From IMG/VR virus record IMGVR_UViG_3300023174_000038, positions 186,001 to 250,000 of that record: a stretch of DNA of 64,000 nt; one strand, given 5' to 3'. Positions 3,877 to 16,935 of this stretch are shown one piece after another (position 1 is the first letter of the stretch; the number at the start of each line of letters is the position of its first letter). The notes beneath the pieces are model-generated. The model ran no database searches. It was given only the letters and a program-made list of their open reading frames with translations, and was not told the origin of the DNA. The position numbers and the translations under genes are program-made.

Positions 3877-5016
3877 ATGACTCATTTTAATCCTCATTCA
3901 AATGATTGGTTAAAAAATAAATTTGATATATATAAAGAACTTAGAGCTAGAGATAAAGCATACTGGAGTGAAACCTATCAATTATATGTTATTACTAGAT
4001 ATGCCGATGTAAAATATGCGCTAAGTGAACATGATATCTTCTCATCTGCTAAGGGAAACTTAATAGTAGAAATGCCCTTTAGATTTGGCAGAACGTTAGG
4101 TGCTAGTGACAACCCATCACATGATGTATTTAAAAATATAGTAAAAAATGCGTATAGTAAGGATAATATAAATCGTATAGTAGATTTATTTTCTATTAAG
4201 GCAATAGAGTTACTTGAGAATAAACAATCGTTTAATGTTTCTACCGTTATAGAAGAACTAAGTGCTTGGGTAACTGCAGAAATATTAAACCTACCTTATG
4301 ATAAAGAACAGGTTAAAAATATCATTTTAGGTATACAGCGTCATAGTCCAGGATGTGTTTCAGTTAATGTAGATAGAACGTATTTAAATATATTTACTAA
4401 GTTACTTGATGACTTAACATCTAGAAAAGTAAAACCCACTGGTCCGGGTATATATAAAGAATTTATGACTAATCATCCAGATGTACAACCGGTAATGTCT
4501 TTGTTTCATGGACCAACTATATCCGGAGCTAGTTCACTTACCGGAGCATTAGAATTTTTAACATTAGATGTAGTTAGAGAAAATCAATTAGATATATTAT
4601 TAGAAGATAGGAATAATATTCCCAGCGTAATAGAAGAATCATTAAGATTTCATGCATCAACTGGTAGATTTTCTAGAACAGTAACTAAAGATGTAACACT
4701 ACATGGGATTGACCTTAAACCAGGTGATAGAGTTGCGTTATGTTTAGAATCTGCAAATAGAGACCCTGAAAAATTCATAGACCCTGAGAAATTCATTCTT
4801 AATAGAAGTACAGTTGGTCAATTAGCATTTGGTCATGGATTACATGCTTGTATAGCATTAGCTATTAGTAAATCAATAATGACTAAATATTTAGATATAT
4901 TATTAGATGTTGTTGGCAAATACAAAATAACAACATCTAATTCTGAATTAGAATATGTAATGACTGCATCCGGCAATGATGATATGATATCTAATATATG
5001 TATAGAAAAAATATAA
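3877..5016 (+). CDS. Cytochrome P450
   Basis: EESLR (ExxR), SANRDPEKF, heme motif FGHGLHACIA. Confidence 0.93.
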   Translation: MTHFNPHSNDWLKNKFDIYKELRARDKAYWSETYQLYVITRYADVKYALSEHDIFSSAKGNLIVEMPFRFGRTLGASDNPSHDVFKNIVKNAYSKDNINRIVDLFSIKAIELLENKQSFNVSTVIEELSAWVTAEILNLPYDKEQVKNIILGIQRHSPGCVSVNVDRTYLNIFTKLLDDLTSRKVKPTGPGIYKEFMTNHPDVQPVMSLFHGPTISGASSLTGALEFLTLDVVRENQLDILLEDRNNIPSVIEESLRFHASTGRFSRTVTKDVTLHGIDLKPGDRVALCLESANRDPEKFIDPEKFILNRSTVGQLAFGHGLHACIALAISKSIMTKYLDILLDVVGKYKITTSNSELEYVMTASGNDDMISNICIEKI

Positions 5017-5017
5017 T

Positions 5018-5587
5018 ATGACAACTAGATACAATGATAATCCTGACTATGTAAGAAAGGCATTCAATCAACTAGCAGATCCATTTGCTGATTTTGTTGT
5101 GCCTGAAACTTGGGACAACGTACAAGAATTTGCAGATTGGTGGATGGGAATACGTATGCCTATTGTTTTTCCTAAGTATCCGGAAGTATTTTTGTCAGAT
5201 GATGCTACTGCTATATGTTTATTCCGTAAAGGACGATTTCAAGTTGAGTTGTATTTAATACACCCAAAGCCCGGTGTTCCAACACATGAACATCCTGATG
5301 TTGAAGTGATTAAAATACGTACCGGGTTACCCGGAGGACCAGTAGCAAGTGATGTATTATATAATGGTCAAGCACACGGGTCTGGTATGAAATTAGAAGC
5401 AGAGATAAGAGGGTTCCCCTTACTTGCCATTCAGCATTGGCTTACTAGGGAGCCTACTACTATTGCATCAATGTGGAAAGGTCCTACTGCAGGACCTATA
5501 CATGAAGCACTTATACGCAGATACAATCCAGATGCGTATGTAATAGAAGGCTATGCAGATATTACACAAAAGATGAATAAGTCATAG
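5018..5587 (+). CDS. Cupin-like protein, paralog 2
   Basis: HEHPDVE and AHG motifs; similar to 2938-3528. Confidence 0.6.
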   Translation: MTTRYNDNPDYVRKAFNQLADPFADFVVPETWDNVQEFADWWMGIRMPIVFPKYPEVFLSDDATAICLFRKGRFQVELYLIHPKPGVPTHEHPDVEVIKIRTGLPGGPVASDVLYNGQAHGSGMKLEAEIRGFPLLAIQHWLTREPTTIASMWKGPTAGPIHEALIRRYNPDAYVIEGYADITQKMNKS

Positions 5588-6055
5588 TGACTTTAACATT
5601 TCTTCATGAATAGGACCTAGTGGCTCTCCACGATATTCTATAGTAGCACTTAATGGGTTTTTGATATCGGCAGGCCAACGTTGAATGTTATAAACTACTG
5701 CACCACGTGGTCCTATATCAAACCCATGTGTAATACTACTAGGACTAATTTTTCCTATAACACCCACATCTTCATCAGTAAGAACAATTGTCATAAGTGG
5801 TACAGGGTCGGGAAATTTAAGATAAGCAGTCATATCCCCACTTATAAAAATTACTTGATTCTCAAAAGGATGTGAATGCATTACTGTTGTTTTGTTTGGA
5901 AACAATAAGTAATATTCAATTACTACATTACCCTCAACCCATGCTAATGTACTAGCACTAGTGTCGGTATAGAAAACTCTATTATTTGGGATGTTAGGCA
6001 TATGGCAAAAACCACTGTCAACAAACGATTGTATTATCTCATCTGCGCTACGCAT
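5582..6055 (-). CDS. Cupin-like protein, paralog 3
   Basis: HSHPFEN, THG, EYRGEPLGPIHE matching paralogs 1 and 2. Confidence 0.6.
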   Translation of the reverse strand: MRSADEIIQSFVDSGFCHMPNIPNNRVFYTDTSASTLAWVEGNVVIEYYLLFPNKTTVMHSHPFENQVIFISGDMTAYLKFPDPVPLMTIVLTDEDVGVIGKISPSSITHGFDIGPRGAVVYNIQRWPADIKNPLSATIEYRGEPLGPIHEEMLKSL

Positions 6056-6134
6056 ATTTTAGTACTCTCTTTCAATATATTTATTCACATTTAGTACTCA
6101 TATTGATTTTTGGGTCATTTGTTTTTTAAAATGC

Positions 6135-6163
6135 TTGACATTAATTCTTGGCTGTGTTATACT
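6135..6163 (+). promoter_or_regulatory. Sigma70-type promoter
   Basis: TTGACA-17 nt-TATACT. Confidence 0.8.
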
Positions 6164-6227
6164 TCAGCATGAATTGAAAAAAGGTGTAAAAATACACTAA
6201 TTTACAACCAGGACTAAATAAAAGACT

Positions 6228-6365
6228 ATGATGAATAAAACTTGTAACATGCTAAAGCATATCGGACAGTGGCTAACGTTAGTCAGTGTATCCTTTGTAC
6301 CAGCATATCCAACAAGTATTCGCGGTTCAAATGATAACCAAGAAAGAACCCCGGGGACTAGGTAA
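6228..6365 (+). CDS. Putative attenuator leader peptide (45 aa, all 20 amino acids)
   Basis: MMNKTCNMLKHIGQWLTLVSVSFVPAYPTSIRGSNDNQERTPGTR*; TAAATA at 6215-6220; terminator follows. Confidence 0.65.
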   Translation: MMNKTCNMLKHIGQWLTLVSVSFVPAYPTSIRGSNDNQERTPGTR

Positions 6366-6392
6366 CAAGTTAACATCATAACAACTTTATCT

Positions 6393-6433
6393 AACCCCTG
6401 GGAAACTAAAAAGTCTCAGGGGTTTTTGCTTTT
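6393..6433 (+). terminator. Intrinsic terminator / attenuator hairpin
   Basis: AACCCCTGGGA...TCTCAGGGGTT stem followed by TTTGCTTTT. Confidence 0.8.
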
Positions 6434-6445
6434 ACAGAGAGGAAT

Positions 6446-6474
6446 TTGACAAGAAATGGATAAACAGATAGAAT
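6446..6474 (+). promoter_or_regulatory. Sigma70-type promoter
   Basis: TTGACA-17 nt-TAGAAT. Confidence 0.65.
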
Positions 6475-6623
6475 ACAAAACTTCTGAAAACAAACGTGAT
6501 TGGTTTAGCAATCATGTTTTGACTAAGGAACAAGTAGCACAGTTGATAGAGAATAAACTTCAACGTGCTAAAGTCTATCAAGAGGCTATTGAGAAAGTTA
6601 AAAAACTAACTTATACCAATTGA
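6456..6623 (+). CDS. Small hypothetical protein (55 aa)
   Basis: MDKQIEYKTSENKRDWFSNHVLTKEQVAQLIENKLQRAKVYQEAIEKVKKLTYTN*; GAGG upstream. Confidence 0.55.
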   Translation: MDKQIEYKTSENKRDWFSNHVLTKEQVAQLIENKLQRAKVYQEAIEKVKKLTYTN

Positions 6624-6624
6624 T

Positions 6625-6750
6625 AGATAGCGTGAATAGGCAACGAGAGCCGTAATACAGCGCAAAATGTATAGAATGGGCGGACTGAGGCATAAAATCT
6701 GTGGCGGTAACACAGAAAGTCAGAATCAGGCGGAGGTAACGATCTCCGCA
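6625..6750 (+). ncRNA. Candidate structured ncRNA A
   Basis: GC-enriched non-coding stretch; hairpins TCTGTG/CACAGA and GCGGAG/CTCCGC. Confidence 0.45.
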
Positions 6751-6759
6751 GAAAAGGAT

Positions 6760-7374
6760 TTAGTTCCTTTTCTTATATAAATCTCTTTCATTATTGTAAC
6801 GATTGAATTTACGACCTTTAATCCAACCCTGGTCATAATAGTGAGGATAAAGCGCATATGGAATACATTGACTCTTGCTCAAATCAAAGTTTGAAACCCA
6901 GATAGTATTTCCTTTAGCATTTCCTTTCCTTTCTTTTGTCCAACTAAGGCGTTGTCCATGTGAACTGGCCGCTAGGTATTTTTCACGATAAACGGCATCA
7001 TTTAACATTCTATCTCGGTGCTTTAATCCTGCAATCTTAGCAGCCTTGGTTTGCTGTCCCGGTTGATGTCCTTGATTAGGTAATGTGTTTATATAAGAAA
7101 AGGAACCGTGGCCCCCTTCTACTATATTATAAGTAGTGTCTAAACTAACGAAATCCGCGTTTACGACCTGTTTTTCTCTAAATAACATTGATTCTTTGTC
7201 ATTGAAGTGTTCAATGATTTCTTTGACAAAATTCTCTTTACCATATTTTTTGATTGCACGATGAAGATTCAGACCGGATCCAAAGTACCCATCATTTAAG
7301 TCGGAAGTTTGATGAACACCTATATAGATTTTATTATTTAATGTATTGGTGATTTTGTATAGATAATAGAACAT
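6760..7374 (-). CDS. GIY-YIG homing endonuclease (Seg-like)
   Basis: YLYKITN...KIYIG, YFGSG, AIKKYGKENF, YNIVEGG. Confidence 0.88.
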   Translation of the reverse strand: MFYYLYKITNTLNNKIYIGVHQTSDLNDGYFGSGLNLHRAIKKYGKENFVKEIIEHFNDKESMLFREKQVVNADFVSLDTTYNIVEGGHGSFSYINTLPNQGHQPGQQTKAAKIAGLKHRDRMLNDAVYREKYLAASSHGQRLSWTKERKGNAKGNTIWVSNFDLSKSQCIPYALYPHYYDQGWIKGRKFNRYNNERDLYKKRN

Positions 7375-7428
7375 ATTGTATTTATACGGACAGTAAGATG
7401 AAACTATATTAATATACTAACCCTATCA

Positions 7429-7529
7429 TGTCGTGTAGTGATACACGGCATTCTAAAACATACATCGTGGAAAATAAGGCCAAGAGGGCAACCCTGTTGA
7501 TTAGGGTGTACTATGTGTGTTTTAGAATG
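7429..7529 (+). ncRNA. Candidate structured ncRNA B (long closing stem)
   Basis: Hairpin TGTCGTGTA/TACACGGCA then 17-bp stem CATTCTAAAACATACAT/ATGTGTGTTTTAGAATG ending at the tRNA-Arg start. Confidence 0.55.
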
Positions 7530-7605
7530 CGACCGTAACTCAGTGGATTAGAGTACCTGTCTACGAAATAGGGAGTCGGAGGTTCAAGTCCTTCCGGTCG
7601 CACCA
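7529..7605 (+). tRNA. tRNA-Arg(ACG)
   Basis: Cloverleaf, anticodon arm CCTGT-CT ACG AA-ATAGG, encoded CCA. Confidence 0.95.
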
Positions 7606-7611
7606 ATATAT

Positions 7612-7687
7612 GGGACCATAGCTCAGTCGGTAGAGCAGTGGACTTTTAATCCATTGGTCGGGCGTTCGAACCGCCCTGGTCCCACCA
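7612..7687 (+). tRNA. tRNA-Lys(TTT)
   Basis: GTGGA-CT TTT AA-TCCAT, CCA. Confidence 0.95.
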
Positions 7688-7693
7688 TAATAT

Positions 7694-7783
7694 GGAAACG
7701 TGGCAGAGTTTGGTTTATTGCAACAGTCTTGAAAACTGTCGGTCCGAAAGGGCCCGTGAGTTCAAATCTCACCGTTTCTACCA
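7694..7783 (+). tRNA. tRNA-Ser(TGA)
   Basis: ACAGT-CT TGA AA-ACTGT, long variable arm, CCA. Confidence 0.95.
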
Positions 7784-7784
7784 T

Positions 7785-7861
7785 GGTGCTTGTCGTCAAG
7801 CGGTTAAGACCTCGGATTGTGATTCCGATATGCGTGGGTTCAAATCCCATCAAGCACCCCA
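7785..7861 (+). tRNA. tRNA-His(GTG)
   Basis: TCGGA-TT GTG AT-TCCGA, G-1:C73, CCA. Confidence 0.95.
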
Positions 7862-7862
7862 T

Positions 7863-7937
7863 GGATGTATAGCACAGCGGTAGTGCAATTCCTTCATACG
7901 GAATAGGTCAGTAGTTCAAATCTACTTACATCCACCA
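7863..7937 (+). tRNA. tRNA-Met(CAT), probably elongator
   Basis: ATTCC-TT CAT AC-GGAAT, CCA. Confidence 0.85.
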
Positions 7938-7942
7938 AACAT

Positions 7943-8016
7943 GCCCGGTTAGTTAAAAAGTATAACACACCCCTGATAAGGGTGAATCAGAGGAGCATTA
8001 CCTCTACTGGGTACCA
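7943..8016 (+). tRNA. tRNA-Ile(GAT), atypical D and T loops
   Basis: CACCC-CT GAT AA-GGGTG; acceptor GCCCGGT/ACTGGGT-A-CCA; T loop AGCATTA. Confidence 0.8.
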
Positions 8017-8023
8017 AATTTAC

Positions 8024-8097
8024 TGGGGGTTAGTTAAATGGTATAACATCGGATTTTGATTCCGAGATCACAAGTTCAATTCTTGTACCCTCTGCCA
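8024..8097 (+). tRNA. tRNA-Gln(TTG)
   Basis: TCGGA-TT TTG AT-TCCGA, CCA. Confidence 0.92.
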
Positions 8098-8179
8098 GTT
8101 ACGGAATATAATAAAGCCAAATTGATTGACAATCTGATATTAATCCTATTATAATGTTAAAAATTATATAGAAAGGTAT

Positions 8180-8503
8180 GTGATGGCAGGCAGATACATC
8201 GTTAGAAAATTTAAAAACGGAGTTAAGCATTTTTGGGATACTGATACAGGCAGTTGTATACACTGGTCTAAAGTCCAAGAGCGTATACCTAAAAAAGAAT
8301 TTGACAAATTATTTGAACAATTCAACAATAAACAACCAAAAAAAGAAAATGTTACTGAGCCACTTCCAAAACTATCTGAAATTTTGAGTGAAGTAATTAA
8401 CTTATATTCTGAAAAAATTTCAATAGAAGAAATAGTTGGAGCATTGGAGTTGTGCAAGACCCGTGCGTTAACAATGCATAAAATAAAAAAAATAAATCAA
8501 TGA
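8180..8503 (+). CDS. Hypothetical protein
   Basis: ORF after TTGACA-18-TATAAT (8126-8155) with AAGG SD. Confidence 0.65.
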   Translation: MMAGRYIVRKFKNGVKHFWDTDTGSCIHWSKVQERIPKKEFDKLFEQFNNKQPKKENVTEPLPKLSEILSEVINLYSEKISIEEIVGALELCKTRALTMHKIKKINQ

Positions 8504-8664
8504 GAGTGCCAGTTATGGGATAGACGATAGATTTGAGTCCCTGTCAATCTAGTCACAGTGGGGTTAACTGTGATGACACTATAGTATGATTTACGGGTGT
8601 ATAAACTTGCCTATACGAGACAATCTAACGAGGCTTACTAACAATAAGATAGTTAGGCTCCCTC
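8502..8664 (+). ncRNA. Candidate structured ncRNA C
   Basis: Hairpins TAGATT/AATCTA, TCACAGT/ACTGTGA, GTATA/TATAC, CTAAC/GTTAG; partial end pairing. Confidence 0.5.
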
Positions 8665-8671
8665 TTTTATC

Positions 8672-8746
8672 GGGTCCTTAGTTCAATGGATAGAATACGA
8701 TGCTTCGAACTTCGGGATGTGGGTTCAATTCCTGCAGGACCCGCCA
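8672..8746 (+). tRNA. tRNA-Arg(TCG)
   Basis: CGATG-CT TCG AA-CTTCG, acceptor GGGTCCT/AGGACCC-G-CCA. Confidence 0.88.
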
Positions 8747-8793
8747 TATGGCATTAAATACATATAGTGATAATAACAGAAAAGGAGTACTAC

Positions 8794-9354
8794 ATGGCTG
8801 TTCTAGCACTAGATATCTCGGGAGTTCCCCGGCAATGGATATCAAATGATGACGCAATTACCTATAAAGCAAAAGATGCCATAGCATGGTCAATGGGTAA
8901 TATTGTGGCTAAATATCGTGGTGGCATACAAAATGACGGTACATTAAGTTACTTAGAAGCTAATAGCATTATTGCTATCAAAGGTCATGGATTCAATCCA
9001 TACAAACACTCATGTGTTGCATTAACTAATAAAACATTGTTTGGTCGTGATAGACATGTATGTGCTTATTGCGGTGAACAGTTTCCAAACTATCATCTAT
9101 TAAGTCGTGACCACATTGTTCCACGTAGCAAAGGTGGTGAAAACACTTGGATGAATGTTGTTACCAGTTGTAAAACTTGTAACAGCAAAAAAGGACATAA
9201 GAGTTTAAAAGAAGTACGTATGGAATTACTATATGCACCTTATGTCCCAAACCACTACGAAAATATGATATTACAACATAGAACAATACTTGCTGACCAA
9301 ATGGAATATTTGTTAGCAGGTGTTCCAAAACATAGTAGAATATTATTAAGTTAG
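8794..9354 (+). CDS. HNH endonuclease family protein
   Basis: RDRHVCAYCG, SRDHIVPRSKGG, NVVTSCKTCNSKK; AAGGAG SD before ATG 8794. Confidence 0.9.
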   Translation: MAVLALDISGVPRQWISNDDAITYKAKDAIAWSMGNIVAKYRGGIQNDGTLSYLEANSIIAIKGHGFNPYKHSCVALTNKTLFGRDRHVCAYCGEQFPNYHLLSRDHIVPRSKGGENTWMNVVTSCKTCNSKKGHKSLKEVRMELLYAPYVPNHYENMILQHRTILADQMEYLLAGVPKHSRILLS

Positions 9355-9379
9355 TGTATAATACTATTAAATAAAATAC

Positions 9380-9454
9380 TCCCTTATAGCTCAGTGGTAG
9401 AGCAGCGCCCTTGTAAGGCGAAGGTCCCGTGTTCAAGTCATGGTGGGGGAACCA
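9380..9454 (+). tRNA. tRNA-Thr(TGT)
   Basis: CGCC-CT TGT AA-GGCG, CCA. Confidence 0.93.
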
Positions 9455-9461
9455 AATATAT

Positions 9462-9537
9462 TCTCTTGTAGCTCAGTCGGTAGAGCGTTTGACTGTTAAT
9501 CAAAATGTCCCTGGTTCGAGCCCAGGCAAGGGAGCCA
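9462..9537 (+). tRNA. tRNA-Asn(GTT)
   Basis: TTTGA-CT GTT AA-TCAAA, CCA. Confidence 0.95.
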
Positions 9538-9542
9538 AATTT

Positions 9543-10241
9543 ATGCATAAGATAAAAATATTCAGTCATATCATTGATACCCCAGATAGTTTAATGATTT
9601 TTAATAATCAATTCTCTTTACTTAAAGAAACTGGGTTACTAGACGTGGCATACAAAATATATCTATGCGTTAACGGAGAAGTATCTAAATTTGATACAAT
9701 ACAAGAATTAGCGAATCAATATCATAATGTAGAAATGATTCATACCAATACTAGTATTGAACATTATGAATATCCCACATTAAATTTTCTTAAAGAAAAT
9801 ATTGATAACGATACTGATTCTTATATTTTGTATTTTCATGTTAAAGGTGCTAGTAAAAACGAATCCAAAGATATACGTAATTGGCGTTTTCTATTAGAAT
9901 ACTATAATATCATAAAATATCAAACCTGTATAGATTATCTTAACAAGGGATATGATACAGTTGGTATACTATATAGAGAGGGTTTTCATAGTCAATGGCT
10001 ACACTATAGTGGAAACTTTTGGTGGGCTAATTCTAATCATATTAAGCGTTTACCTAAATTACCTCACCCATCTGATACATTAGGTGGCGGGAATAGTAAA
10101 ATTAGTATGTTGCCGTATATGAATGAAAACTTTAGATATGACCATGAAGCTTGGATAGGTTGTGTCAAACCCTGGAATTATATATCGTTGTTCCAAGATG
10201 ATATAGAAGAAGAAACACGTAGGATAATGAAATTATGTTAG
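9543..10241 (+). CDS. Hypothetical protein, possibly glycosyltransferase-like
   Basis: YEYPTL, LYFHVKG, HYSGNFWWA motifs; start moved past the tRNAs. Confidence 0.6.
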   Translation: MHKIKIFSHIIDTPDSLMIFNNQFSLLKETGLLDVAYKIYLCVNGEVSKFDTIQELANQYHNVEMIHTNTSIEHYEYPTLNFLKENIDNDTDSYILYFHVKGASKNESKDIRNWRFLLEYYNIIKYQTCIDYLNKGYDTVGILYREGFHSQWLHYSGNFWWANSNHIKRLPKLPHPSDTLGGGNSKISMLPYMNENFRYDHEAWIGCVKPWNYISLFQDDIEEETRRIMKLC

Positions 10242-10951
10242 TATCAGTAGACCCTTTTTATCATGTAACCATTGACAATTTTTTTGAGGAATCTTTAGCA
10301 GAAAAACTATCTAATGAATTTATTGATTATAATGATGAACGTTGGTTTTATTACAATAATGTTATTGAAAATAAAAAAACATTAAACGATTGGAGATTTT
10401 TACCCAAACATATATATCAAGCATTCACTCAGTTTTGCTCAGATGAATTTGTTAAAAAACTACAAGATATGACTGGTATAGAAAAATTGTATCCTGATTA
10501 TGGATTGCATGGTGGCGGCTGTCATATGCATGGTAGAAACGGTAAACTTAATATACATAGAGATTATTCTATACACCCTAAATTAGGATTAGAACGAAAG
10601 TTAAATCTTATTATATATCTATCTAAAGATTGGGATACGTCATGGGGAGGTGGATTAGAATTATGGTCACACGATGATGAAAACAATCAACCAAAAGAAA
10701 AAGTAAAAGAAGTAGAATGTGTTTTTAATCGTGCTGTACTTTTTGATACGACACAAGATTCTTGGCATGGTTTACCTGAACCCTTACGTTGTCCTGCAGG
10801 TGTCTATAGAAAAAGTTTAGCTATGTATTATATGACTAACCCTAGCCTAGAGGTTGACCCAAGACAACGGGCATTATTTGCACCCACAGAAAATCAGAAA
10901 AATGATATTGAAGTAAAAAACTTCATAGAAGAAAGAACAAAGCTTTCTTAA
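10235..10951 (+). CDS. 2OG-Fe(II) oxygenase
   Basis: HRD...LIIYL..WGGGLELW..FNRAVLF..SWHG..RKS. Confidence 0.88.
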   Translation: MLVSVDPFYHVTIDNFFEESLAEKLSNEFIDYNDERWFYYNNVIENKKTLNDWRFLPKHIYQAFTQFCSDEFVKKLQDMTGIEKLYPDYGLHGGGCHMHGRNGKLNIHRDYSIHPKLGLERKLNLIIYLSKDWDTSWGGGLELWSHDDENNQPKEKVKEVECVFNRAVLFDTTQDSWHGLPEPLRCPAGVYRKSLAMYYMTNPSLEVDPRQRALFAPTENQKNDIEVKNFIEERTKLS

Positions 10952-10954
10952 TAG

Positions 10955-11029
10955 CTGGCGTTAGTATAATGGATAATACAATCGGCTTCTACCCGATGAA
11001 TGTGGGTTCGATTCCTGCACGCCGGACCA
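10955..11029 (+). tRNA. tRNA-Arg(TCT)
   Basis: ATCGG-CT TCT AC-CCGAT, CCA. Confidence 0.92.
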
Positions 11030-11083
11030 AATAATATACGTATTTTATAGGTTAGAGATAAATACTCTAACCGAGGAGAGAGT

Positions 11084-11425
11084 ATGTGGAAATGTAAAAC
11101 ATGTGAAAAAGAAGGACAGGAACATTTTTATAAAAGCCAAGCTTGGTATTGTAAAAGTTGTTGGAATGTTCGTACGGCACACCGATCTAAAAACAATGTA
11201 AAAATTCTTAAAGAAGAATACGGTGGAAAATGCACCAAGTGTGGTTACAATAAATGCATGGATGCACTACAGTTTCACCATGTTGATCCTACTAAAAAGG
11301 AATTTTCATTAGGGTTAGCAAGACAAAAAAATTTAGATAAACTTAGAAAAGAGATGGACAAGTGTATTTTGGTTTGTAGTAATTGTCATATTGAAATTCA
11401 CCATGACATACATAAAAATAAATAA
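11084..11425 (+). CDS. HNH endonuclease with Zn-binding Cys pairs
   Basis: CxxC pairs, LQFHHVDP, CILVCSNCH. Confidence 0.85.
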   Translation: MWKCKTCEKEGQEHFYKSQAWYCKSCWNVRTAHRSKNNVKILKEEYGGKCTKCGYNKCMDALQFHHVDPTKKEFSLGLARQKNLDKLRKEMDKCILVCSNCHIEIHHDIHKNK

Positions 11426-11427
11426 AA

Positions 11428-11456
11428 TAGAGGTTCGATTCCTCTACGCCGGACCA
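11428..11456 (+). repeat. Duplicated 3' end (T arm and acceptor strand) of tRNA-Arg(TCT)
   Basis: AGAGGTTCGATTCCTCTACGCCGGACCA vs GTGGGTTCGATTCCTGCACGCCGGACCA at 11002-11029. Confidence 0.9.
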
Positions 11457-12035
11457 TTATTGAATTAGAAGTTGCCAATCTTCATTGCTATAGTGATAAT
11501 CTTCCAACACTTCTAGCATTCTTGCAAAGACAATTAATCCTCTTTTGTGATTAATTAATTCTATTTGATGTAATTTTATCTTCTTTTCAGCAAAAGTTTT
11601 TAATAAATTCTCACCCTCTTTTTTCAACTTAATTTTTTTTGAAACAATATTCAATTTGGCTATTAGATTGTTACATTCTACGATGGCAACAGAGGTTTGT
11701 TGTTGTAATGCACGTATTTCTATTTTCATTTTTAGTATTAAGTCATCAAATTCTGGGTTAATGTGTGGTAGAAATTGTGTTATCATAACAGACAGTCTAC
11801 CAAAGACTTCAGTATTAAGATTGAAGTCATCATAGTGATCACCTGTTGAATCATAGTGTTCACGTTTAGTTGGATCACTTAACACTTCATATGCTAATTT
11901 CATTCGCTTAAACTTTTCTACATCTCCTCCCTTGTCAGGATGATATAATTGTGCCAAGATTCTGTATTTTTGTTTGATTTCTTCAGACGTACAGGTTTTT
12001 GGTAATTCTAAATCATCGTATAGGGAGGTTGTCAT
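11457..12035 (-). CDS. DnaJ-domain protein
   Basis: LYDDLEL...YHPDKGG...AYEVLSDPTKREHYD. Confidence 0.88.
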   Translation of the reverse strand: MTTSLYDDLELPKTCTSEEIKQKYRILAQLYHPDKGGDVEKFKRMKLAYEVLSDPTKREHYDSTGDHYDDFNLNTEVFGRLSVMITQFLPHINPEFDDLILKMKIEIRALQQQTSVAIVECNNLIAKLNIVSKKIKLKKEGENLLKTFAEKKIKLHQIELINHKRGLIVFARMLEVLEDYHYSNEDWQLLIQ

Positions 12036-12088
12036 AACAATATTTATCATGAAATATTGCATGTAGTATTAAGTACTATGTTTAAAAT

Positions 12089-12198
12089 TTGACAATAAAT
12101 CCTCAATCTGCTATACTCTAGTTATAGATTGATTGAACAAGTTTTTGGGAAACAGTGAAACAAAAGAATTTGACAATAAATGGTAGTTATGATACAAT
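12089..12198 (+). promoter_or_regulatory. Two tandem sigma70-type promoters
   Basis: TTGACAATAAAT...TATACT and TTGACAATAAAT...TACAAT, 17-nt spacers. Confidence 0.75.
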
Positions 12199-12286
12199 CA
12201 TAGCATGAGTTGAGAAAGTCATCGTACTAATCAACAAGGTTCTTTAAAATTCTGAGTTATCATATAGCCCTGTTTAAGTTACAGGG

Positions 12287-12501
12287 ACTATATGAAAATA
12301 CATTAAGGTCACCTAATCCGTTAGGCAGGTCTATGGGGTCAGCCGGTGGACGACGCCGGGTCGCATAGGGTGCAAGAAGCGTATCGACAATAGCAATATT
12401 GTTTAACGTGACGGGCAGTTAGGCAGTAATGACAGAAACAACGATCCAGTAGACGGTACTGGTGGATACAGTTTACGTTCCTTAATGTGTTTTCATATAG
12501 T
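12287..12501 (+). ncRNA. Candidate structured ncRNA D (22-bp closing stem)
   Basis: ACTATATGAAAATACATTAAGG/CCTTAATGTGTTTTCATATAGT enclosing a GC-rich multibranch core. Confidence 0.65.
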
Positions 12502-12502
12502 G

Positions 12503-12629
12503 TGTTATTAGTTTTGCTGACGTAAGCGCCTGAGTAAACGTCAACTCTAACTAACTATGTATAGAAACGGTAAACTTGCAAATAATTCCGTTGAGCATAG
12601 CAAATAGTGCGTCAGCAAAACTAATAACA
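12503..12629 (+). ncRNA. Candidate structured ncRNA E (22-bp closing stem)
   Basis: TGTTATTAGTTTTGCTGACGTA/TGCGTCAGCAAAACTAATAACA, ends 1 nt before tRNA-Glu. Confidence 0.65.
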
Positions 12630-12630
12630 T

Positions 12631-12705
12631 GGAGCATTCGTCTATCGGTTAGGACATTAGGTTTTCATCCTAAGAAGAGGAGTTCGATTCTCCTATGCTC
12701 TTCCA
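12631..12705 (+). tRNA. tRNA-Glu(TTC)
   Basis: TTAGG-TT TTC AT-CCTAA, CCA. Confidence 0.93.
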
Positions 12706-12708
12706 AAG

Positions 12709-12905
12709 AATCCCGTTACTACTTTCGTTAAAGTAGCGTTTGAATAGCGATAGAGTTCCGGTGGCAGAAAACCGTTAGCGTGAGGATTAAAAATACCCTC
12801 GCAGGCTCTGATAGGCAGAATCTCAACTGCACACAGACTTTGAATAAATGGAGATGGACAGAGTAACTGCTCAATTAAGGGCTTGTGTGGAAACAAGTAG
12901 CTTAT
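12709..12905 (+). ncRNA. Candidate structured ncRNA F
   Basis: Hairpins CTACTTT/AAAGTAG, CGGT/ACCG, GCGTGAGG/CCTCGC, GAG-TAACTG-CTC, CTTGT/ACAAG. Confidence 0.5.
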
Positions 12906-12915
12906 ACTAATTTTT

Positions 12916-12978
12916 TGAGTTACATCGCCTTGATACTTCTCTCAGTAATGAGACACTAGGTCTTGCAACCGTAACTCA
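12916..12978 (+). ncRNA. Small tRNA-sized structured element G
   Basis: TGAGTTAC/GTAACTCA closing stem; inner TCTCA-GTAA-TGAGA. Confidence 0.4.
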
Positions 12979-12982
12979 TCTT

Positions 12983-13068
12983 GGAGATGTAGGAAAATTG
13001 GTAACCCCAGGAGACTGTAAATCTTCCGCCTTATGGCACTACTGGTTCAACTCCAGTCGTCTCCACCA
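12983..13068 (+). tRNA. tRNA-Tyr(GTA)
   Basis: GGAGA-CT GTA AA-TCTTC, variable arm, CCA. Confidence 0.93.
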
Positions 13069-13135
13069 AGAATATAGGAGGGTCGCTGGGCAGGCGTACT
13101 CTTAAACGACCTAGGCCAAAGGGGTGTCCTATTCT
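13069..13135 (+). ncRNA. Small structured element H
   Basis: ATAGGA/TCCTAT outer stem, GGGTCG/CGACCT inner stem. Confidence 0.4.
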
Positions 13136-13141
13136 GTGTTA

Positions 13142-13216
13142 GGTCTCAAAGTGTTCACGGACGCATACATGCCTGTCACGCATGAGGAGCGGGATCGTTA
13201 CCCGCTGGGACCGCCA
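13142..13216 (+). tRNA. tRNA-Asp(GTC), atypical T loop
   Basis: CATGC-CT GTC AC-GCATG; T loop ATCGTTA; GCCA end. Confidence 0.88.
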
Positions 13217-13262
13217 AAATATTTGACAACAATCATTGTATGATATATAGATAACAAGTTTT

Positions 13263-13347
13263 GCGAGTGTGGTGGAATCGGAATACACACAAGACTTAAA
13301 ATCTTGCGCCGCAAGGATTGAGGGTTCAAGTCCCTCCACTCGCACCA
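13263..13347 (+). tRNA. tRNA-Leu(TAA)
   Basis: CAAGA-CT TAA AA-TCTTG, variable arm, CCA. Confidence 0.95.
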
Positions 13348-13356
13348 AAGAATGAT

Positions 13357-13433
13357 GCCTCTATAGCGCAATTGGTTAGCGCAGCGGACTCATAATCCGT
13401 TGGTTCCTGGTTCGAGTCCAGGTGGAGGCACCA
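13357..13433 (+). tRNA. tRNA(CAT), probably Ile2 (lysidine type)
   Basis: GCGGA-CT CAT AA-TCCGT; context resembles proteobacterial tRNA-Ile2. Confidence 0.8.
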
Positions 13434-13441
13434 GTTAAGCA

Positions 13442-13533
13442 GGAGACGTGGCCGAGTGGCCGAAGGCAGCAGGTTGCTAACCTGTCGTATGTAGTAATAT
13501 GTACCGTGAGTTCGAATCTCACCGTCTCCACCA
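13442..13533 (+). tRNA. tRNA-Ser(GCT)
   Basis: GCAGG-TT GCT AA-CCTGT, long variable arm, CCA. Confidence 0.95.
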
Positions 13534-13534
13534 A

Positions 13535-13717
13535 TTAGCGATGGTTTGTTTTGTTTATGATTTGATGTAAGATGTTAGGATCATCACTCATCATCCTAGC
13601 TAGTAAACCAGTAAGATAACCCCGTTCATATAATAATTGTTCGTGGCTATCTTTGTAATTACGTTTGTTTTGACGCAACAACTTTTCAACAACATCAATA
13701 CAGTTTTGTAGTTCCAT
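13535..13717 (-). CDS. Small hypothetical protein (MELQNC...)
   Basis: TAAATA 4 nt upstream of ATG 13717. Confidence 0.6.
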   Translation of the reverse strand: MELQNCIDVVEKLLRQNKRNYKDSHEQLLYERGYLTGLLARMMSDDPNILHQIINKTNHR

Positions 13718-13732
13718 ACTGTATTTATAAAA

Positions 13733-13930
13733 GAACGTTCCGGGTGTCTCCGGATAGTGTGACCCACACGATGAGAAGTAGTGTGACAACTACGGGTGGT
13801 AGTCTTTAAACCGAAAGGCCGCTAGCAATGCGAGAACGGTCCCTGTCGGGAAGCGGGTGGAAGGAGTGTGTGATGGGTATGATAGCGTCATATCTTGATA
13901 CTCTATAATTACCGCCGGGGGATGCAGAGC
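13733..13930 (+). ncRNA. Candidate structured ncRNA I
   Basis: GC-rich; hairpins TCCGG/CCGGA, GTGTG/CACAC, GTAGT/ACTAC, TATGA/TCATA; TCCCT/GGGGA. Confidence 0.55.
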
Positions 13931-13936
13931 ATATAT

Positions 13937-14014
13937 GCAACGGTGGCAGAGTGGTCCAATGCAACGGATTGCAAATCCGTAAAACCGTCAGTTCAAATCT
14001 GACCCGTTGCTCCA
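13937..14014 (+). tRNA. tRNA-Cys(GCA)
   Basis: ACGGA-TT GCA AA-TCCGT, U73-CCA. Confidence 0.93.
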
Positions 14015-14019
14015 AACAA

Positions 14020-14184
14020 TTATAGTGCTTGTATAAAAGCAAGTGCTGTTTCAATATTATTGAAGAATTTCATAGTCAATTTGAAATTGTCAACATCAAA
14101 TACCATAATGTAAAATGTATGTTCAGCACTCATTGATAAGTGTATAACAAGTCCTGTTTTCGTGATAGCGTCATATATGTACAT
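14020..14184 (-). CDS. Small hypothetical protein (MYIYDAITK...)
   Basis: TAAATA 5 nt upstream of ATG 14184; longer ORF overlaps tRNA-Gly. Confidence 0.55.
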   Translation of the reverse strand: MYIYDAITKTGLVIHLSMSAEHTFYIMVFDVDNFKLTMKFFNNIETALAFIQAL

Positions 14185-14196
14185 AAATATATTTAT

Positions 14197-14270
14197 GCGG
14201 GGTTCGTATAGTGGTAATACCTCAGCCTTCCAAGCTGATGCGGAGAGTTCGATTCTCTTACCCCGCTCCA
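14197..14270 (+). tRNA. tRNA-Gly(TCC)
   Basis: TCAGC-CT TCC AA-GCTGA, U73-CCA. Confidence 0.95.
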
Positions 14271-14286
14271 TTATTATAAATATCAT

Positions 14287-14817
14287 ATGAAATTACTATT
14301 TGTGCCATTAGATATAAAAGTCACTGATATCAACTTTGATTTAGGTGAAAAACAAAACTATCACATAAATCATTGGGAAACATTTGATGTTATTGGGAAA
14401 GAAAATAATTATCAAAACTATAACAGTTTATTAAATCAACTTCCAATAACGGATATCACTATCTTTACACATAAGATTCAAAAAACTAAAATTGGACCTC
14501 ATTATGATTATCATGGTTTGCATGATGAATTATATAAACATTTCAAAGAAAATGAGCCAGCCGGCTATCATGTAGTTTTAAAAGGTAAAGGTGACTCATT
14601 AGAAATTTTTAACGGCAAAGAATGGATTAACCCTATATTACCTAAAGTGCCTATAGCATACTTACTAAATTTAACTTCTTGCATACATAGAGTAAAAGAA
14701 GATAATTCAAGAGAAACACTGTATATACAAGGTTGGTTAGATATTAAAAAACATAATCAATTAATAGAACGCAGTTTAAAACAATATGGCAATCTAGCAG
14801 TATATAGCCAAGCTTAA
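14287..14817 (+). CDS. Hypothetical protein, possible double-stranded beta-helix oxygenase
   Basis: PHYD...IHRV...R pattern; TATAAATA upstream. Confidence 0.5.
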   Translation: MKLLFVPLDIKVTDINFDLGEKQNYHINHWETFDVIGKENNYQNYNSLLNQLPITDITIFTHKIQKTKIGPHYDYHGLHDELYKHFKENEPAGYHVVLKGKGDSLEIFNGKEWINPILPKVPIAYLLNLTSCIHRVKEDNSRETLYIQGWLDIKKHNQLIERSLKQYGNLAVYSQA

Positions 14818-15093
14818 TTATTTACCAATTCTATTTAAAATGTTCATTGCTCTGGTTCTTAACCGTTCAGTAAATTCTGATTCAGTTAATGCTCCTTTAG
14901 CAAGATTACATTTTCTACAAGTTACTTGAAGATTATTATACGTGGTTTCTCCACCTTTACTTTCAGCAATCACATGATCTATGTGTATTTCTTTATCGGA
15001 TAAGTCTTCATCACAATAGACACACCATTTTCCGTCCCTTTCAATAACTCTACGACGTAGGTTAAGAGGGATGTATTGTTTCTTTTGTAGCAT
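14818..15093 (-). CDS. HNH endonuclease
   Basis: RDGKWCVYC, HIDHVIAESKGG, NLQVTCRKCNLAK. Confidence 0.9.
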   Translation of the reverse strand: MLQKKQYIPLNLRRRVIERDGKWCVYCDEDLSDKEIHIDHVIAESKGGETTYNNLQVTCRKCNLAKGALTESEFTERLRTRAMNILNRIGK

Positions 15094-15158
15094 AAATTTA
15101 TTTAGCTACCCAAATATAGTAGACAGATAAATAGTTTTCTGTTATTATGAATAATAAA

Positions 15159-15243
15159 GCGGACGTGGCGTAATTGGCAGCCGCACCAGATTTAGGTTCT
15201 GGCGTCGTAAGATGTGTGAGTTCGAGTCTCACCGTCCGCACCA
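15159..15243 (+). tRNA. tRNA-Leu(TAG)
   Basis: CCAGA-TT TAG GT-TCTGG, CCA. Confidence 0.95.
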
Positions 15244-15247
15244 AACA

Positions 15248-15321
15248 GGGGGATTGATGTAATGGGAGCCTGGGACCTTTGCAAGGTCTTCGTAACAGTT
15301 CGATTCTGTTATCCTCCACCA
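15248..15321 (+). tRNA. tRNA-Ala(TGC)
   Basis: GGACC-TT TGC AA-GGTCT; G3:U70; CCA. Confidence 0.9.
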
Positions 15322-15327
15322 AGATAG

Positions 15328-15402
15328 CGCGGGGTAGAGAAGTAGTAACTCATCAGGCTCATAACCTGAAGATCGGCGGTGCGAATCCGTCCCCCGCATC
15401 CA
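15328..15402 (+). tRNA. Initiator tRNA-fMet(CAT)
   Basis: CGCGGGG/CCCCGCA with C1:A72 mismatch; TCAGG-CT CAT AA-CCTGA. Confidence 0.9.
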
Positions 15403-15406
15403 GTTA

Positions 15407-15483
15407 CGGAGTGTGGCGCAGTCTGGTAGCGCACCTGGTTTGGGACCAGGGGGTCCAAGGTTCGAATCCTTGTACTCCGACCA
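15407..15483 (+). tRNA. tRNA-Pro(TGG)
   Basis: CCTGG-TT TGG GA-CCAGG, CCA. Confidence 0.95.
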
Positions 15484-15505
15484 ATGTTTTTAAAAAGGAA
15501 ATAGT

Positions 15506-15670
15506 ATGACATGCAGAGGATATGATGCGAAAGCAGTGAAAGTTTCAAAGACAGTTAAACGTGCCGCGGCAAAAATTATGGACAACCATAAGCGTGGTGA
15601 CTTTATTCGTAGTTATGTAGAGATTGAAAGAAGTAATTCACGTACAGGTTCTCGTAAGGATAGCAAATGA
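15506..15670 (+). CDS. Small basic hypothetical protein (MTCRGYDAK...)
   Basis: 54-aa ORF with AAGGA SD. Confidence 0.55.
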   Translation: MTCRGYDAKAVKVSKTVKRAAAKIMDNHKRGDFIRSYVEIERSNSRTGSRKDSK

Positions 15671-15846
15671 GTAAAGGTAGCTTGCCAAGACCTTATAGTG
15701 TTGATTTGAAAACTTTCAACAATAATTGGGATAATATCTTTCGCAAGCCTGATCCAAGAATTATTGAGGATCAAAAGAATGAAGATGAAGCATTTGAACA
15801 AATTGCTAGTCAATCAGAAGTTAAAGATAGTACCCAAGGTGGTTAA
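15667..15846 (+). CDS. Small hypothetical protein (MSKGSLPRP...)
   Basis: 59-aa ORF coupled by ATGA overlap. Confidence 0.55.
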   Translation: MSKGSLPRPYSVDLKTFNNNWDNIFRKPDPRIIEDQKNEDEAFEQIASQSEVKDSTQGG

Positions 15847-15855
15847 ATAGAATGT

Positions 15856-15930
15856 GGATCGTTAACTCAGTGGTAGAGTAGCGCCTTTACACGGCGAATG
15901 TCGGGAGTTCGACCCTCTCACGATCCACCA
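15856..15930 (+). tRNA. tRNA-Val(TAC)
   Basis: CGCC-TT TAC AC-GGCG, CCA. Confidence 0.93.
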
Positions 15931-15945
15931 AACAAAGGAGTAATT

Positions 15946-16086
15946 ATGAGCAAAAGTGAAGATGTAATTAATAGAGCATACGGACACATTGTCAAAGAAG
16001 TTACTCCGGTACTTATTTTTGATATTACTATATTTCGTGGTTTTAAATACTATTGGTACAAATTACTTAGAAAAGTAACAAGATAA
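15946..16086 (+). CDS. Small hypothetical protein
   Basis: AAGGAG SD then ATG 15946. Confidence 0.5.
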   Translation: MSKSEDVINRAYGHIVKEVTPVLIFDITIFRGFKYYWYKLLRKVTR

Positions 16087-16090
16087 AATT

Positions 16091-16627
16091 ATGGCACATC
16101 CGCAACAATTTAATTATATACAAAAACTTAAACTATTATATCCAACTCATTTCTTTAATAGCAAAGTACTTGAAGTGGGTAGTCTTAACATTAATGGTTC
16201 AATACGAATCTTTTTTAGTCATTGTGATTATTTAGGAATTGATGTTGGTCCGGGTAATGATGTTGACTTAGTATGTGAAGGTCAAACGTTAGATCATCCA
16301 GACAATACATATGATACAGTTGGTAGCTGTGAATGTTTTGAACATAATCCTTATTGGGTAGAAACATTCGTTAACATGCATCGTATGGCTAAACCAAATG
16401 GACTAGTGTTTATGACATGTGCTACTACTGGTAGACCAGAACACGGTACTACTCGTACTACACCACAAGATAGTCCTCTTACTACAGGTATAGGGTGGGA
16501 CTATTATAGAAATTTAACTGAAGAAGATTTCAGAAAAGAATTAGACATAGATAATATGTTTAGTACATATAAATTTGAAGTGGGTTCACCCCATGCAGAT
16601 TTGTATTTTTATGGTATTAAAAAATAA
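16091..16627 (+). CDS. Class I SAM-dependent methyltransferase
   Basis: VLEVGS, YLGIDVGPG, CFEHNP. Confidence 0.8.
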   Translation: MAHPQQFNYIQKLKLLYPTHFFNSKVLEVGSLNINGSIRIFFSHCDYLGIDVGPGNDVDLVCEGQTLDHPDNTYDTVGSCECFEHNPYWVETFVNMHRMAKPNGLVFMTCATTGRPEHGTTRTTPQDSPLTTGIGWDYYRNLTEEDFRKELDIDNMFSTYKFEVGSPHADLYFYGIKK

Positions 16628-16635
16628 AGGTAAAT

Positions 16636-16857
16636 ATGTCACAAAGCAGAGCAAGATATTCAAGTGAAGAAGCCGCACTTATGGTCGGTAATCGTTTTGA
16701 TTTAGTTCTTATCGCTTCACAAAGAGTAAGAGAATTAAAGCGAGGACATCGTTCACTACTTACTACTAAAGCAGGACCAATGGTAACTGCATTAGAAGAA
16801 ATTGAACAAGGACTTGTTGGACGTGAATATCTTAAACGTATTAGAAAAAATTTGTAA
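16636..16857 (+). CDS. rpoZ: RNA polymerase omega subunit
   Basis: ARYSSEEA..VGNRFDLVLIASQRVREL..ALEEIEQG. Confidence 0.9.
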   Translation: MSQSRARYSSEEAALMVGNRFDLVLIASQRVRELKRGHRSLLTTKAGPMVTALEEIEQGLVGREYLKRIRKNL

Positions 16858-16861
16858 ATAT

Positions 16862-16935
16862 ATCTCCCTAATGTAATGGCAGCATACCGGTCTCCAAAAC
16901 CGTTAGTCAAGGTTCGAGTCCTTGGGGGGATGCCA
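16862..16935 (+). tRNA. tRNA-Trp(CCA)
   Basis: CGGT-CT CCA AA-ACCG, G73-CCA. Confidence 0.9.

Follow-up and report, generated by a model that had tools for sequence, protein, structure and literature searches.

The region ahead of the tRNA array of an uncultured jumbo phage (348.7 kb; IMG/VR) is likely, at a probability of about 0.75, to be a ribosome-mediated transcription attenuator sensing overall decoding capacity. This reading is inferred from sequence comparison, and it rests on a leader ORF that holds all 20 amino acids and runs into one strand of an antiterminator. The window analyzed here is a stretch of 64,000 nucleotides (positions 186,001 to 250,000 of IMG/VR record IMGVR_UViG_3300023174_000038); coordinates refer to it, and features lie on the + strand unless stated otherwise. 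All of the evidence is sequence comparison inside one family of uncultured phages.

Phages have been known to carry tRNA genes for more than 50 years, and the regulation and triggers of these genes are largely unknown. Recent literature links them to the supply of codons in late infection and to evasion of tRNA-cleaving defences; a search of the full-text literature returned no leader or attenuator described ahead of phage tRNA genes. The module would be a simple, directly testable regulatory circuit for such genes. Selection on the completeness of a peptide's amino acid set, and not on its sequence, was likewise not described in the literature searched. If the reading is true, a compact natural element of ~270 nt that signals when decoding of any amino acid fails would be a useful reporter of translation stress.

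Distribution of the module

A search with orf55, a small gene just beyond the terminator, retrieved 16 related loci, and the 400 nt upstream of orf55 contained the same promoter, small ORF, conserved block, and terminator in all 16; in these first relatives, the tRNA array begins ~400 nt downstream. A DNA pattern made from the invariant 5' motif described below matched more than 120 IMG/VR stretches (a lower bound). A profile built from 37 diverse leader peptides matched 132 protein clusters, all of them unnamed or "hypothetical" and originating from JGI, ENA, Logan, and a few NCBI metagenome assemblies. Both routes of ascertainment begin from the same family. The contigs come from lake or sediment samples.

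The module was found only in viral or metagenomic DNA. Cellular genomes (596 Gb, 185,579 species genomes) gave two matches to the 5' pattern and no genuine copy; both matches were assigned to chance because they had neither the ORF nor tRNAs. Megablast of positions 6050 to 6800 against 50,697 cultured-phage records gave no match, and a distant search of positions 5000 to 12000 among cultured phages recovered tRNAs and homing endonucleases only. A region of Asteriusvirus, a cultured jumbo phage, was set aside as a comparator, its tRNAs being scattered among genes. The DnaK protein of the window's phage is ~67% identical to gammaproteobacterial DnaK.

Position relative to tRNA genes was uniform. 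A same-strand tRNA lay downstream (median, 525 nt) in 58/58 loci with at least 1.5 kb of downstream sequence, and no tRNA of either strand lay upstream in any of the 91 loci with at least 2 kb on that side. The arrays headed by the module contain 11 to 40 tRNAs.

Promoter, 5' elements, and leader ORF

Transcription is predicted to begin at P1, a sigma-70 promoter with an extended −10 element (TTGACA-17-TGnTATACT; 6135 to 6163; 11/12 positions matched, TG present). A P1-like promoter was located upstream in 77/83 related loci, and the −35 and −10 boxes showed no variation in alignment A1. The 5' untranslated region carries a hairpin (GGUGUA-AAAA-UACACU; 6183 to 6198) of unknown role, which is longer in most relatives and in which direct reading of alignment A1 shows GUGUAAA/UUUACAC exchanged for GUGCAAA/UUUGCAC. 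It is followed by the invariant motif CCAGGACTAAATAA (6208 to 6221), kept in relatives, which includes the sole Shine-Dalgarno-like AGGA, a TAAATA box, and two TAA stops. The motif (CCAGGACUAAAUAA) nearly repeats the antiterminator strand called segment 2 below, and any role for it beyond ribosome loading is inferred. It occurs as a single copy in the window, which ruled it out as a repeated phage promoter. The AGGA-to-ATG spacing of the leader is 13 nt versus 5 to 8 nt in other genes of the phage.

The leader ORF (6228 to 6365; 45 sense codons) contains all 20 amino acids in 36 distinct codons, among them all four Thr codons, both codons each for Lys, Gln, and Asn, three Arg codons, and three Gly codons. 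Its length was 40 to 59 codons in 85/85 distinct complete relatives, and changes in length preserved the reading frame. Variable columns numbered 13, 13, and 23 by codon position, and pN/pS was 0.39 (0.45 for the neighbouring orf55). These comparisons mark the leader as a genuine coding unit conserved as an ORF; its translation at useful rates is an inference. Peptide motifs such as Lys-His-x-Gly-x-Trp and Ser-Ile-Arg-Gly are kept more tightly than the counting of codons alone would require. Conservation is strongest in Ser-Ile-Arg-Gly and a Pro-Gly motif, which is explained by their being encoded by RNA segments 1 and 2 (below).

A noncoding structured RNA, in which the ORF is a mere by-product of balanced base composition, is extremely unlikely. 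In its favour, the region is GC-richer than the phage, nucleotide conservation is high, and the antisense frame in the window also holds all 20 amino acids. Against it, the sense frame is open for 40 to 59 codons in every relative, whereas the other five frames carry stops; the frame survives length changes, variable columns fall by codon position as counted above, and completeness of an amino acid set belongs to translation, not to RNA. Only 33/83 loci keep the wobble-sharing antisense frame open, which ruled out the antisense ORF at 6197 to 6379 as a real gene, and the remaining frames contain stops.

Downstream of the leader, CAUCAUA (6374 to 6380) is the complement of the start region UAUGAUG (6226 to 6232) and a candidate anti-TIR element. 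The partner of the start region is CAUAGU after the stop codon in some relatives and segment 2 itself in those with a long tail beyond that segment; cognate pairs were better than shuffled ones (P = 0.004, partner shuffle). Possibly, by inference only, this element closes the leader start once the RNA is complete and so confines translation to the cotranscriptional round.

Terminator and antiterminator

The leader is followed by an intrinsic terminator (6393 to 6433) with an 11-bp stem (6393 to 6403/6414 to 6424), then TTTTTGCTTTT, with a U-tract at 6423 to 6433; a simple terminator scanner missed it because its loop exceeds 8 nt. In most loci, 5 to 6 U residues follow the hairpin, and several relatives have weak tracts such as UUUCCA or UUAACC. 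Weaker tracts where the downstream promoter P2 is missing were a trend only (P = 0.067). Pairing was kept in 97% of alignment cells versus 21 to 70% in slid controls, and double-change cells numbered 25 versus 9.9 expected (0/500 shuffles as high). Compensatory changes fell at 3 to 4 pairs, with C-G to A-U in 18 to 23 sequences (18 in A4, the short-tail subset alignment; 22 to 23 in A2, the MAFFT alignment of all types), U-A to C-G in 4 to 6 sequences, and G-C to A-U in 2 to 3.

The 5' arm of this terminator lies in segment 3 (UUAUCUA-A-CCCCUGGG; 6387 to 6402), which can pair either with segment 4, forming the terminator, or with segment 2 (CCCGGGG-AC-UAGGUAA; 6350 to 6365), the 5' strand of an antiterminator made of the last codons of the leader plus its stop (6363 to 6365). 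The antiterminator comprises 7+7 bp (CCCGGGG at 6350 to 6356 with CCCUGGG at 6396 to 6402; UAGGUAA at 6359 to 6365 with UUAUCUA at 6387 to 6393), such that a G-run and an AU-rich stretch in the last codons meet an AU-rich flank and the C-run of the terminator 5' arm. It was present in 83/83 loci at a mean of −11.6 kcal/mol, compared with −6.9 when partners were shuffled and −5.2 when other ORF parts were used, and cognate partners were distinguished from noncognate ones at P = 5e-5 (partner shuffling, 28 types). Its sequence varies between types while complementarity is kept: segment 2 GGGGAC-UAGGUAA occurs with segment 3 UUAUCUA-A-CCCC, GGGG(AG)UUUCAUAGA with UUUAUGAAACCCC, and GGGUUUAGAUA with UAUCUAAACCC. 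Duplex energies and alignment A4 were used for the antiterminator because A2 leaves segment 2 of the long-tail type out of register. On A4 (MAFFT, not fitted to structure), 88% of cells were paired versus 28 to 67% in slid controls, and double-change cells numbered 24 versus 7.1 ± 2.0 in shuffles (0/500 as high). Sequence and comparison thus show two mutually exclusive helices, both with compensatory changes.

Segment 1 (AGUAUUCGCGGU; 6315 to 6326), which encodes Ser-Ile-Arg-Gly, has its predicted partner in the 5' part of segment 2. It might act as a pause or anti-antiterminator hairpin; support for this 1:2 hairpin is weak because both strands are highly conserved and covariation is slight. 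In the window, the predicted folding order is the 1:2 hairpin first, the antiterminator as the minimum-energy fold when the RNA 3' end is at 6403 to 6415, and the terminator plus 1:2 only from a 3' end of 6424 onward. RNAalifold also proposed that the 5' motif pairs with segment 3, a pairing on which covariation is silent because the motif is invariant by ascertainment; segment 3 covaries with segment 2 instead. That a ribosome finishing the ORF would mask segment 2 is inferred from footprint geometry, and in the long-tail type the stop lies 17 to 20 nt past segment 2, so that masking at the stop would be indirect.

An earlier note, made from the letters of the window alone, had placed the promoter, 45-codon ORF, and terminator and had counted codons as given here, and all of these held, as did its TAAATA box, which lies inside CCAGGACTAAATAA. 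The pairing that it drew between CCGGGGACTAG (6351 to 6361) and CTAACCCCTGG (6391 to 6401) held as written and extends to the 7+7 bp above. The note had read the region as an attenuator and had named as computational checks the conservation of ORF length in relatives, codon diversity relative to controls, and covariation of both helices. Each came out in favour: length stayed within 40 to 59 codons, completeness of the amino acid set and the diversity of codons and isoacceptors were above both phylogeny-aware and codon-usage nulls, and both helices showed compensatory changes. The attenuator reading is therefore supported.

Completeness of the amino acid set

Considered as a single sequence, the leader is unusual for this phage. 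Among 45-codon windows of the phage's genes, 0.8% contain all 20 amino acids and 0.15% use 36 or more distinct codons; 3/101 ATG-initiated ORFs of 35 to 65 codons in the window contain all 20 amino acids, namely, the leader, its antisense frame, and a frame overlying tRNA genes. These chance figures are suggestive, not decisive, and significance rests on the comparative data.

All 20 amino acids were found in 79/85 distinct leader peptides (40 to 59 amino acids). For random peptides of 40 to 58 residues, the probability of a complete set is 0.3 to 4.5% with phage composition, 0.6 to 9% with the family's own composition, and 4 to 32% with uniform composition. Plain column shuffling gave 20.6 ± 3.4 complete peptides. 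A tree-aware simulation, which kept column rates, state spectra, and gaps and evolved columns independently, gave 11.6 ± 7.3 complete tips (maximum, 35), and 0/300 runs reached 79. Where a sole Cys, Trp, or His is lost, it reappears elsewhere in the peptide: the usual Cys near position 6 is replaced by one near position 21, within Ser-Ile-Arg-Gly, or elsewhere; the usual Trp by one near the C terminus or after Ile-Arg; and the single His shifts likewise.

Representatives from the profile search were complete in 114/120 cases (103/109 for new sequences), and two of the six incomplete ones were truncated gene calls. Rare residues are favoured by the profile, so this set is only partly independent. 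Shuffle P values, too, overstate independence and are not true probabilities, since the sequences are related. The stronger arguments are the tree-aware simulation and the several independent relocations; on sequence and comparison, completeness of the set is shown to be under selection.

Attenuation predicts that the set should be complete before segment 2, because only stalls upstream of it can free it. This was so in 77/77 complete peptides, with a margin of at least 3 codons in 73/77 (21 expected from within-peptide permutation). Peptides of the long-tail type, which have 10 or more codons after segment 2, were complete upstream in 20/20 cases versus 6.8 expected. When a footprint of 12 nt ahead of the A site was strictly imposed, 32/77 passed versus 14.8 expected, and most of those that failed fell short by between a fraction of a codon and about one codon. 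In a few leaders, a relocated Trp precedes segment 2 by just 2 codons, and a ribosome held up there might still mask that segment. The absence of any amino acid represented only within or after the antiterminator strand goes beyond what the earlier note had predicted.

The leader could instead be a stand-alone early gene for a small trans-acting protein with a host-takeover or antidefence role, its full set of amino acids being incidental; we regard this as very unlikely. Many phage early genes are this small. The strong promoter, the separate terminator, the conserved peptide with recognizable motifs, and a pN/pS value resembling that of orf55 would all suit such a gene. It leaves unexplained, however, the relocation of rare residues once lost, a completeness far above neutral expectation, the absence of any unique residue in or after segment 2, the retention of both Leu, Ser, and Arg codon boxes (below), and the covariation of the ORF 3' end with the terminator flank. 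The peptide also belongs to no Pfam or PHROG family.

Sampling of tRNA species

The leader samples tRNA species as well as amino acids. Both codon boxes were present for Ser in 83/83 leaders, for Leu in 76/83, and for Arg in 72/83, whereas the same peptides written with phage codon usage would be expected to have both in 74, 52, and 49, respectively. The ATA codon was used in 70/83 leaders, and distinct codons per leader averaged 36.1 versus 31.6 expected.

The tRNA array of the window (7529 to 16935) comprises 25 genes of 23 anticodon species, with HNH and other small genes interspersed. The leader in the window has cognate codons for 22 of the 23 species, with only Arg-UCG missing; 655 gene windows of 45 codons covered a mean of 14.9 species and a maximum of 21. 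Across 27 other loci, 481/552 anticodon species were covered, and the misses were mostly second isoacceptors.

Beyond the terminator

A second promoter, P2 (TTGACA-17-TAGAAT; 6446 to 6474), follows the terminator, and its spacer contains the start codon of orf55 (6456 to 6623; pN/pS as above), which encodes a conserved 55-residue protein of unknown function. Because the P2 start site lies inside orf55, RNA that has read through from P1 is the only transcript able to encode this protein. In 62/83 relatives, a P2-like promoter is present past the terminator, and because it is conserved, in the window included, tRNA transcription need not depend on read-through; P2 is likely to supply much of it in the window's phage. 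In 21/82 loci, no P2-like promoter was found; in most of these, the noncoding RNA described next begins 19 to 33 nt past the terminator, and the 21 loci would need P1 read-through, there being no other evident promoter for that RNA and the tRNAs.

Between the attenuator and the first tRNA lies a conserved, GC-rich, structured noncoding RNA of unknown family (6630 to 6775). Its motif was found in 79/83 loci, with compensatory changes at 13/16 predicted pairs; the 3' part of the window copy is divergent. Searches of Pfam, PHROG, and Rfam gave no family for the leader, orf55, or this RNA, and with Rfam models, only tRNA was detected at E ≤ 1 in 5500 to 8000 and at E ≤ 0.1 in four related loci. 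In the window's phage, an opposite-strand gene for a GIY-YIG (SegE-like) homing endonuclease (6760 to 7374, − strand) now separates the noncoding RNA from the tRNA array; it was seen at this site in this phage only and was not there in the first 16 relatives.

An unlikely alternative is that the leader senses decoding while its output is post-transcriptional and not control of termination. The folds would then govern RNA processing or stability, closure of the leader start, or translation of orf55, and the hairpin and U-tract would merely end or stabilize an abundant small RNA. The complementarity between the start region and the downstream element is in keeping with this, as are the ribosome site of orf55 directly 3' of the U-tract, the weak U-tracts in several relatives, and a whole P1 transcript folded more stably than shuffles (z = −3.0). 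Against it, orf55 is missing from many relatives that retain the whole switch, most loci keep 5 to 6 U residues after the hairpin, the two helices compete for one C-run as in classical attenuators, and the 21 loci described above have no other evident source of transcription for the noncoding RNA and the tRNAs.

Proposed mechanism

In the attenuator reading, the leader would serve as a "pangram," with at least one codon for each amino acid and for nearly every phage tRNA species, all placed before the antiterminator strand. P1 would fire, and a ribosome would load on the nascent RNA and trail RNA polymerase. If decoding were unhindered, the ribosome would arrive at the last codons and stop (6350 to 6365) before the 3' arm of the terminator had been made; segment 2 would be masked, segment 3 would pair with segment 4, and the transcript would stop at about 6433. 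If the ribosome were delayed at any codon by an uncharged, scarce, or cleaved tRNA, or had not loaded, segment 2 would be free to pair with the emerging segment 3, which would block the terminator. Read-through from P1 would then enter orf55, the conserved noncoding RNA, and the tRNA array. The net outcome would be negative feedback on decoding capacity, over a P2 baseline where P2 is present.

Translation of the leader at useful rates and the direction and size of the response are inferred; experimental support is lacking for translation, for termination, and for read-through. The natural signal is likewise inferred and may be starvation, a codon-usage mismatch, decay of host tRNAs, or anticodon nucleases. 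The points against an attenuator are the 13-nt Shine-Dalgarno spacing, the conserved P2, the overconserved peptide motifs, the late Trp of a few leaders, and the stop distance of the long-tail type. Conservation of P2 means that the attenuator probably modulates rather than gates tRNA transcription. The claim in the earlier note that the leader would switch on the tRNAs is thus better worded as P1-driven transcription added to a P2 baseline; its link to host anticodon nucleases is pure inference.

A bolder reading, against which we lean slightly, is that the phage has built an alarm for the whole decoding system, in which loss of any tRNA would lift termination. Its triggers would be starvation, decay of host tRNAs in infection, or a host anticodon nuclease or other tRNA-cleaving defence, and read-through would boost a replacement set of tRNAs, together with the unknown noncoding RNA and the 55-residue protein. 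If true, this would be the first known regulatory circuit for phage tRNA genes and the first example of a "pangram" peptide kept by natural selection.

Comparison with known systems

We conclude, at the confidence given at the outset, that the module works as a ribosome-mediated attenuator outside the amino acid operon class and outside curated RNA families. The attenuators of enterobacterial amino acid operons (trp, his, leu, pheA, thr, and ilvGMEDA) are alike in having a translated leader ORF followed by an intrinsic terminator, an antiterminator formed by the ORF 3' region and the terminator 5' arm with a possible 1:2 hairpin, and a fold chosen by the position of the leading ribosome. They differ in using runs of codons for a single amino acid, whereas the phage leader has no runs and holds 20 amino acids, mostly once or a few times each, and in controlling biosynthetic enzymes, whereas the phage module precedes orf55, a noncoding RNA, and 25 tRNA genes. 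Without a ribosome, the predicted default of the phage leader is read-through, whereas trp superattenuates. The module is also phage-borne and has no sequence or Rfam similarity to those leaders.

T-box riboswitches similarly couple tRNA charging to read-through by a terminator/antiterminator choice. A T-box, however, recognizes a single uncharged tRNA by direct binding and involves neither ribosome nor ORF, and no T-box match was obtained at the locus. In the ermC, cat, and ARE-ABCF (e.g., msrD and vmlR) leaders, a stalled ribosome remodels the RNA and induces a relief gene (see also PMC10314930). Such antibiotic-sensing leaders detect drug-bound ribosomes at specific motifs; the phage leader has no known arrest motif and appears, in contrast, to be built for tRNA and amino acid supply at any codon. 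The rRNA and tRNA operons of Escherichia coli pair a regulated upstream P1 with a baseline downstream P2 (see also PMC5179076). There, P1 is controlled at initiation (ppGpp/DksA and Fis), whereas the output of the phage P1 would be controlled by attenuation.

The closest parallel is the mycobacterial whiB7 upstream ORF (uORF), which with its terminator senses translational stalling in general. Stalling there leads to antitermination, the range of starvations sensed depends on the amino acids that the uORF contains, and whiB7 is activated by depletion of tRNAs and tRNA synthetases (PMC10274678). The uORF of Mycobacterium smegmatis contains every amino acid except Cys, and that of Mycobacterium tuberculosis is without several (PMC10274678); since composition varies between species, completeness is not maintained there. 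The output of whiB7 is a transcription factor that serves stress and drug resistance and is encoded in a cellular genome, whereas that of the phage module would be decoding machinery, and the module lies upstream of tRNAs in a phage and not upstream of whiB7 in Actinobacteria. By its composition alone, the phage leader fits the whiB7 type and goes further, with all 20 amino acids present, kept under selection, and relocated within the peptide.

A conserved structured noncoding RNA (window positions 6630-6775, plus strand; for example, 4170-4390 in the related locus L007) lies downstream of the attenuator, ahead of the first tRNA of the array; it was present in 79 of the 83 related loci and had no match in Rfam. 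Compensatory changes were found at 13 of its 16 predicted pairs. The 3' part of the RNA differs in the window copy. Unique to this phage is the insertion of a GIY-YIG (SegE-like) homing endonuclease gene (6760-7374, minus strand) between this RNA and the tRNA array. An HNH endonuclease gene (8767-9354) lies within the array.

Upstream, the leader start-codon region UAUGAUG (6226-6232) is complementary to CAUCAUA (6374-6380), located just past the leader stop codon, and a complement to the start region was retained in other family types with different sequences (partner-shuffle P = 0.004). On the finished RNA, this pairing could possibly close the translation start of the leader. An invariant 5' motif, CCAGGACUAAAUAA (6208-6221), nearly repeats the antiterminator strand, CCGGGGACUAGGUAA (6351-6365), and was predicted by RNAalifold to pair with the AU-rich terminator flank; covariation of the motif could not be assessed, because the family was ascertained via the same motif. 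At the extreme 5' end of the predicted transcript from P1, the promoter of the leader, lies AUGAAUUGA (6171-6179; a start codon, one codon, and a stop codon), which is conserved and nearly invariant among the relatives.

The start codon of orf55, a conserved open reading frame for a 55-aa protein (6456-6623), falls inside the spacer of P2, the second promoter (6446-6474); therefore, P2 transcripts are unable to encode orf55, which can be expressed from P1 read-through only. Neither Pfam nor PHROGs contained a family matching the orf55 protein. A minority of relatives (loci L078, L141, L085, L146, L157, and L114) have UUUCCA, UUUACCA, or UUAACCA in place of the U-tract directly 3' of the terminator stem, and several of these relatives are without P2. 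The association of a weak U-tract with the absence of P2 was a trend only (P = 0.067).

On the opposite strand of the leader, a 60-codon open reading frame (6197-6379, minus strand), whose wobble positions are common to the leader, likewise contains all 20 amino acids; it was ruled out as a conserved gene, being open in just 33 of the 83 relatives.

Just upstream of P1 are two convergent genes (5018-5587, plus strand; 5582-6055, minus strand), neither assigned to a Pfam family and neither conserved 5' of the module in the relatives, whose upstream flanks were all different. His-x-His-Pro-like motifs were noted by eye in both. Elsewhere, the window carries an ATP-dependent DNA ligase gene (61544-62878) and a full-length homologue of DnaK (Hsp70; 53518-55464, minus strand), the product of which is approximately 67% identical to gammaproteobacterial DnaK.
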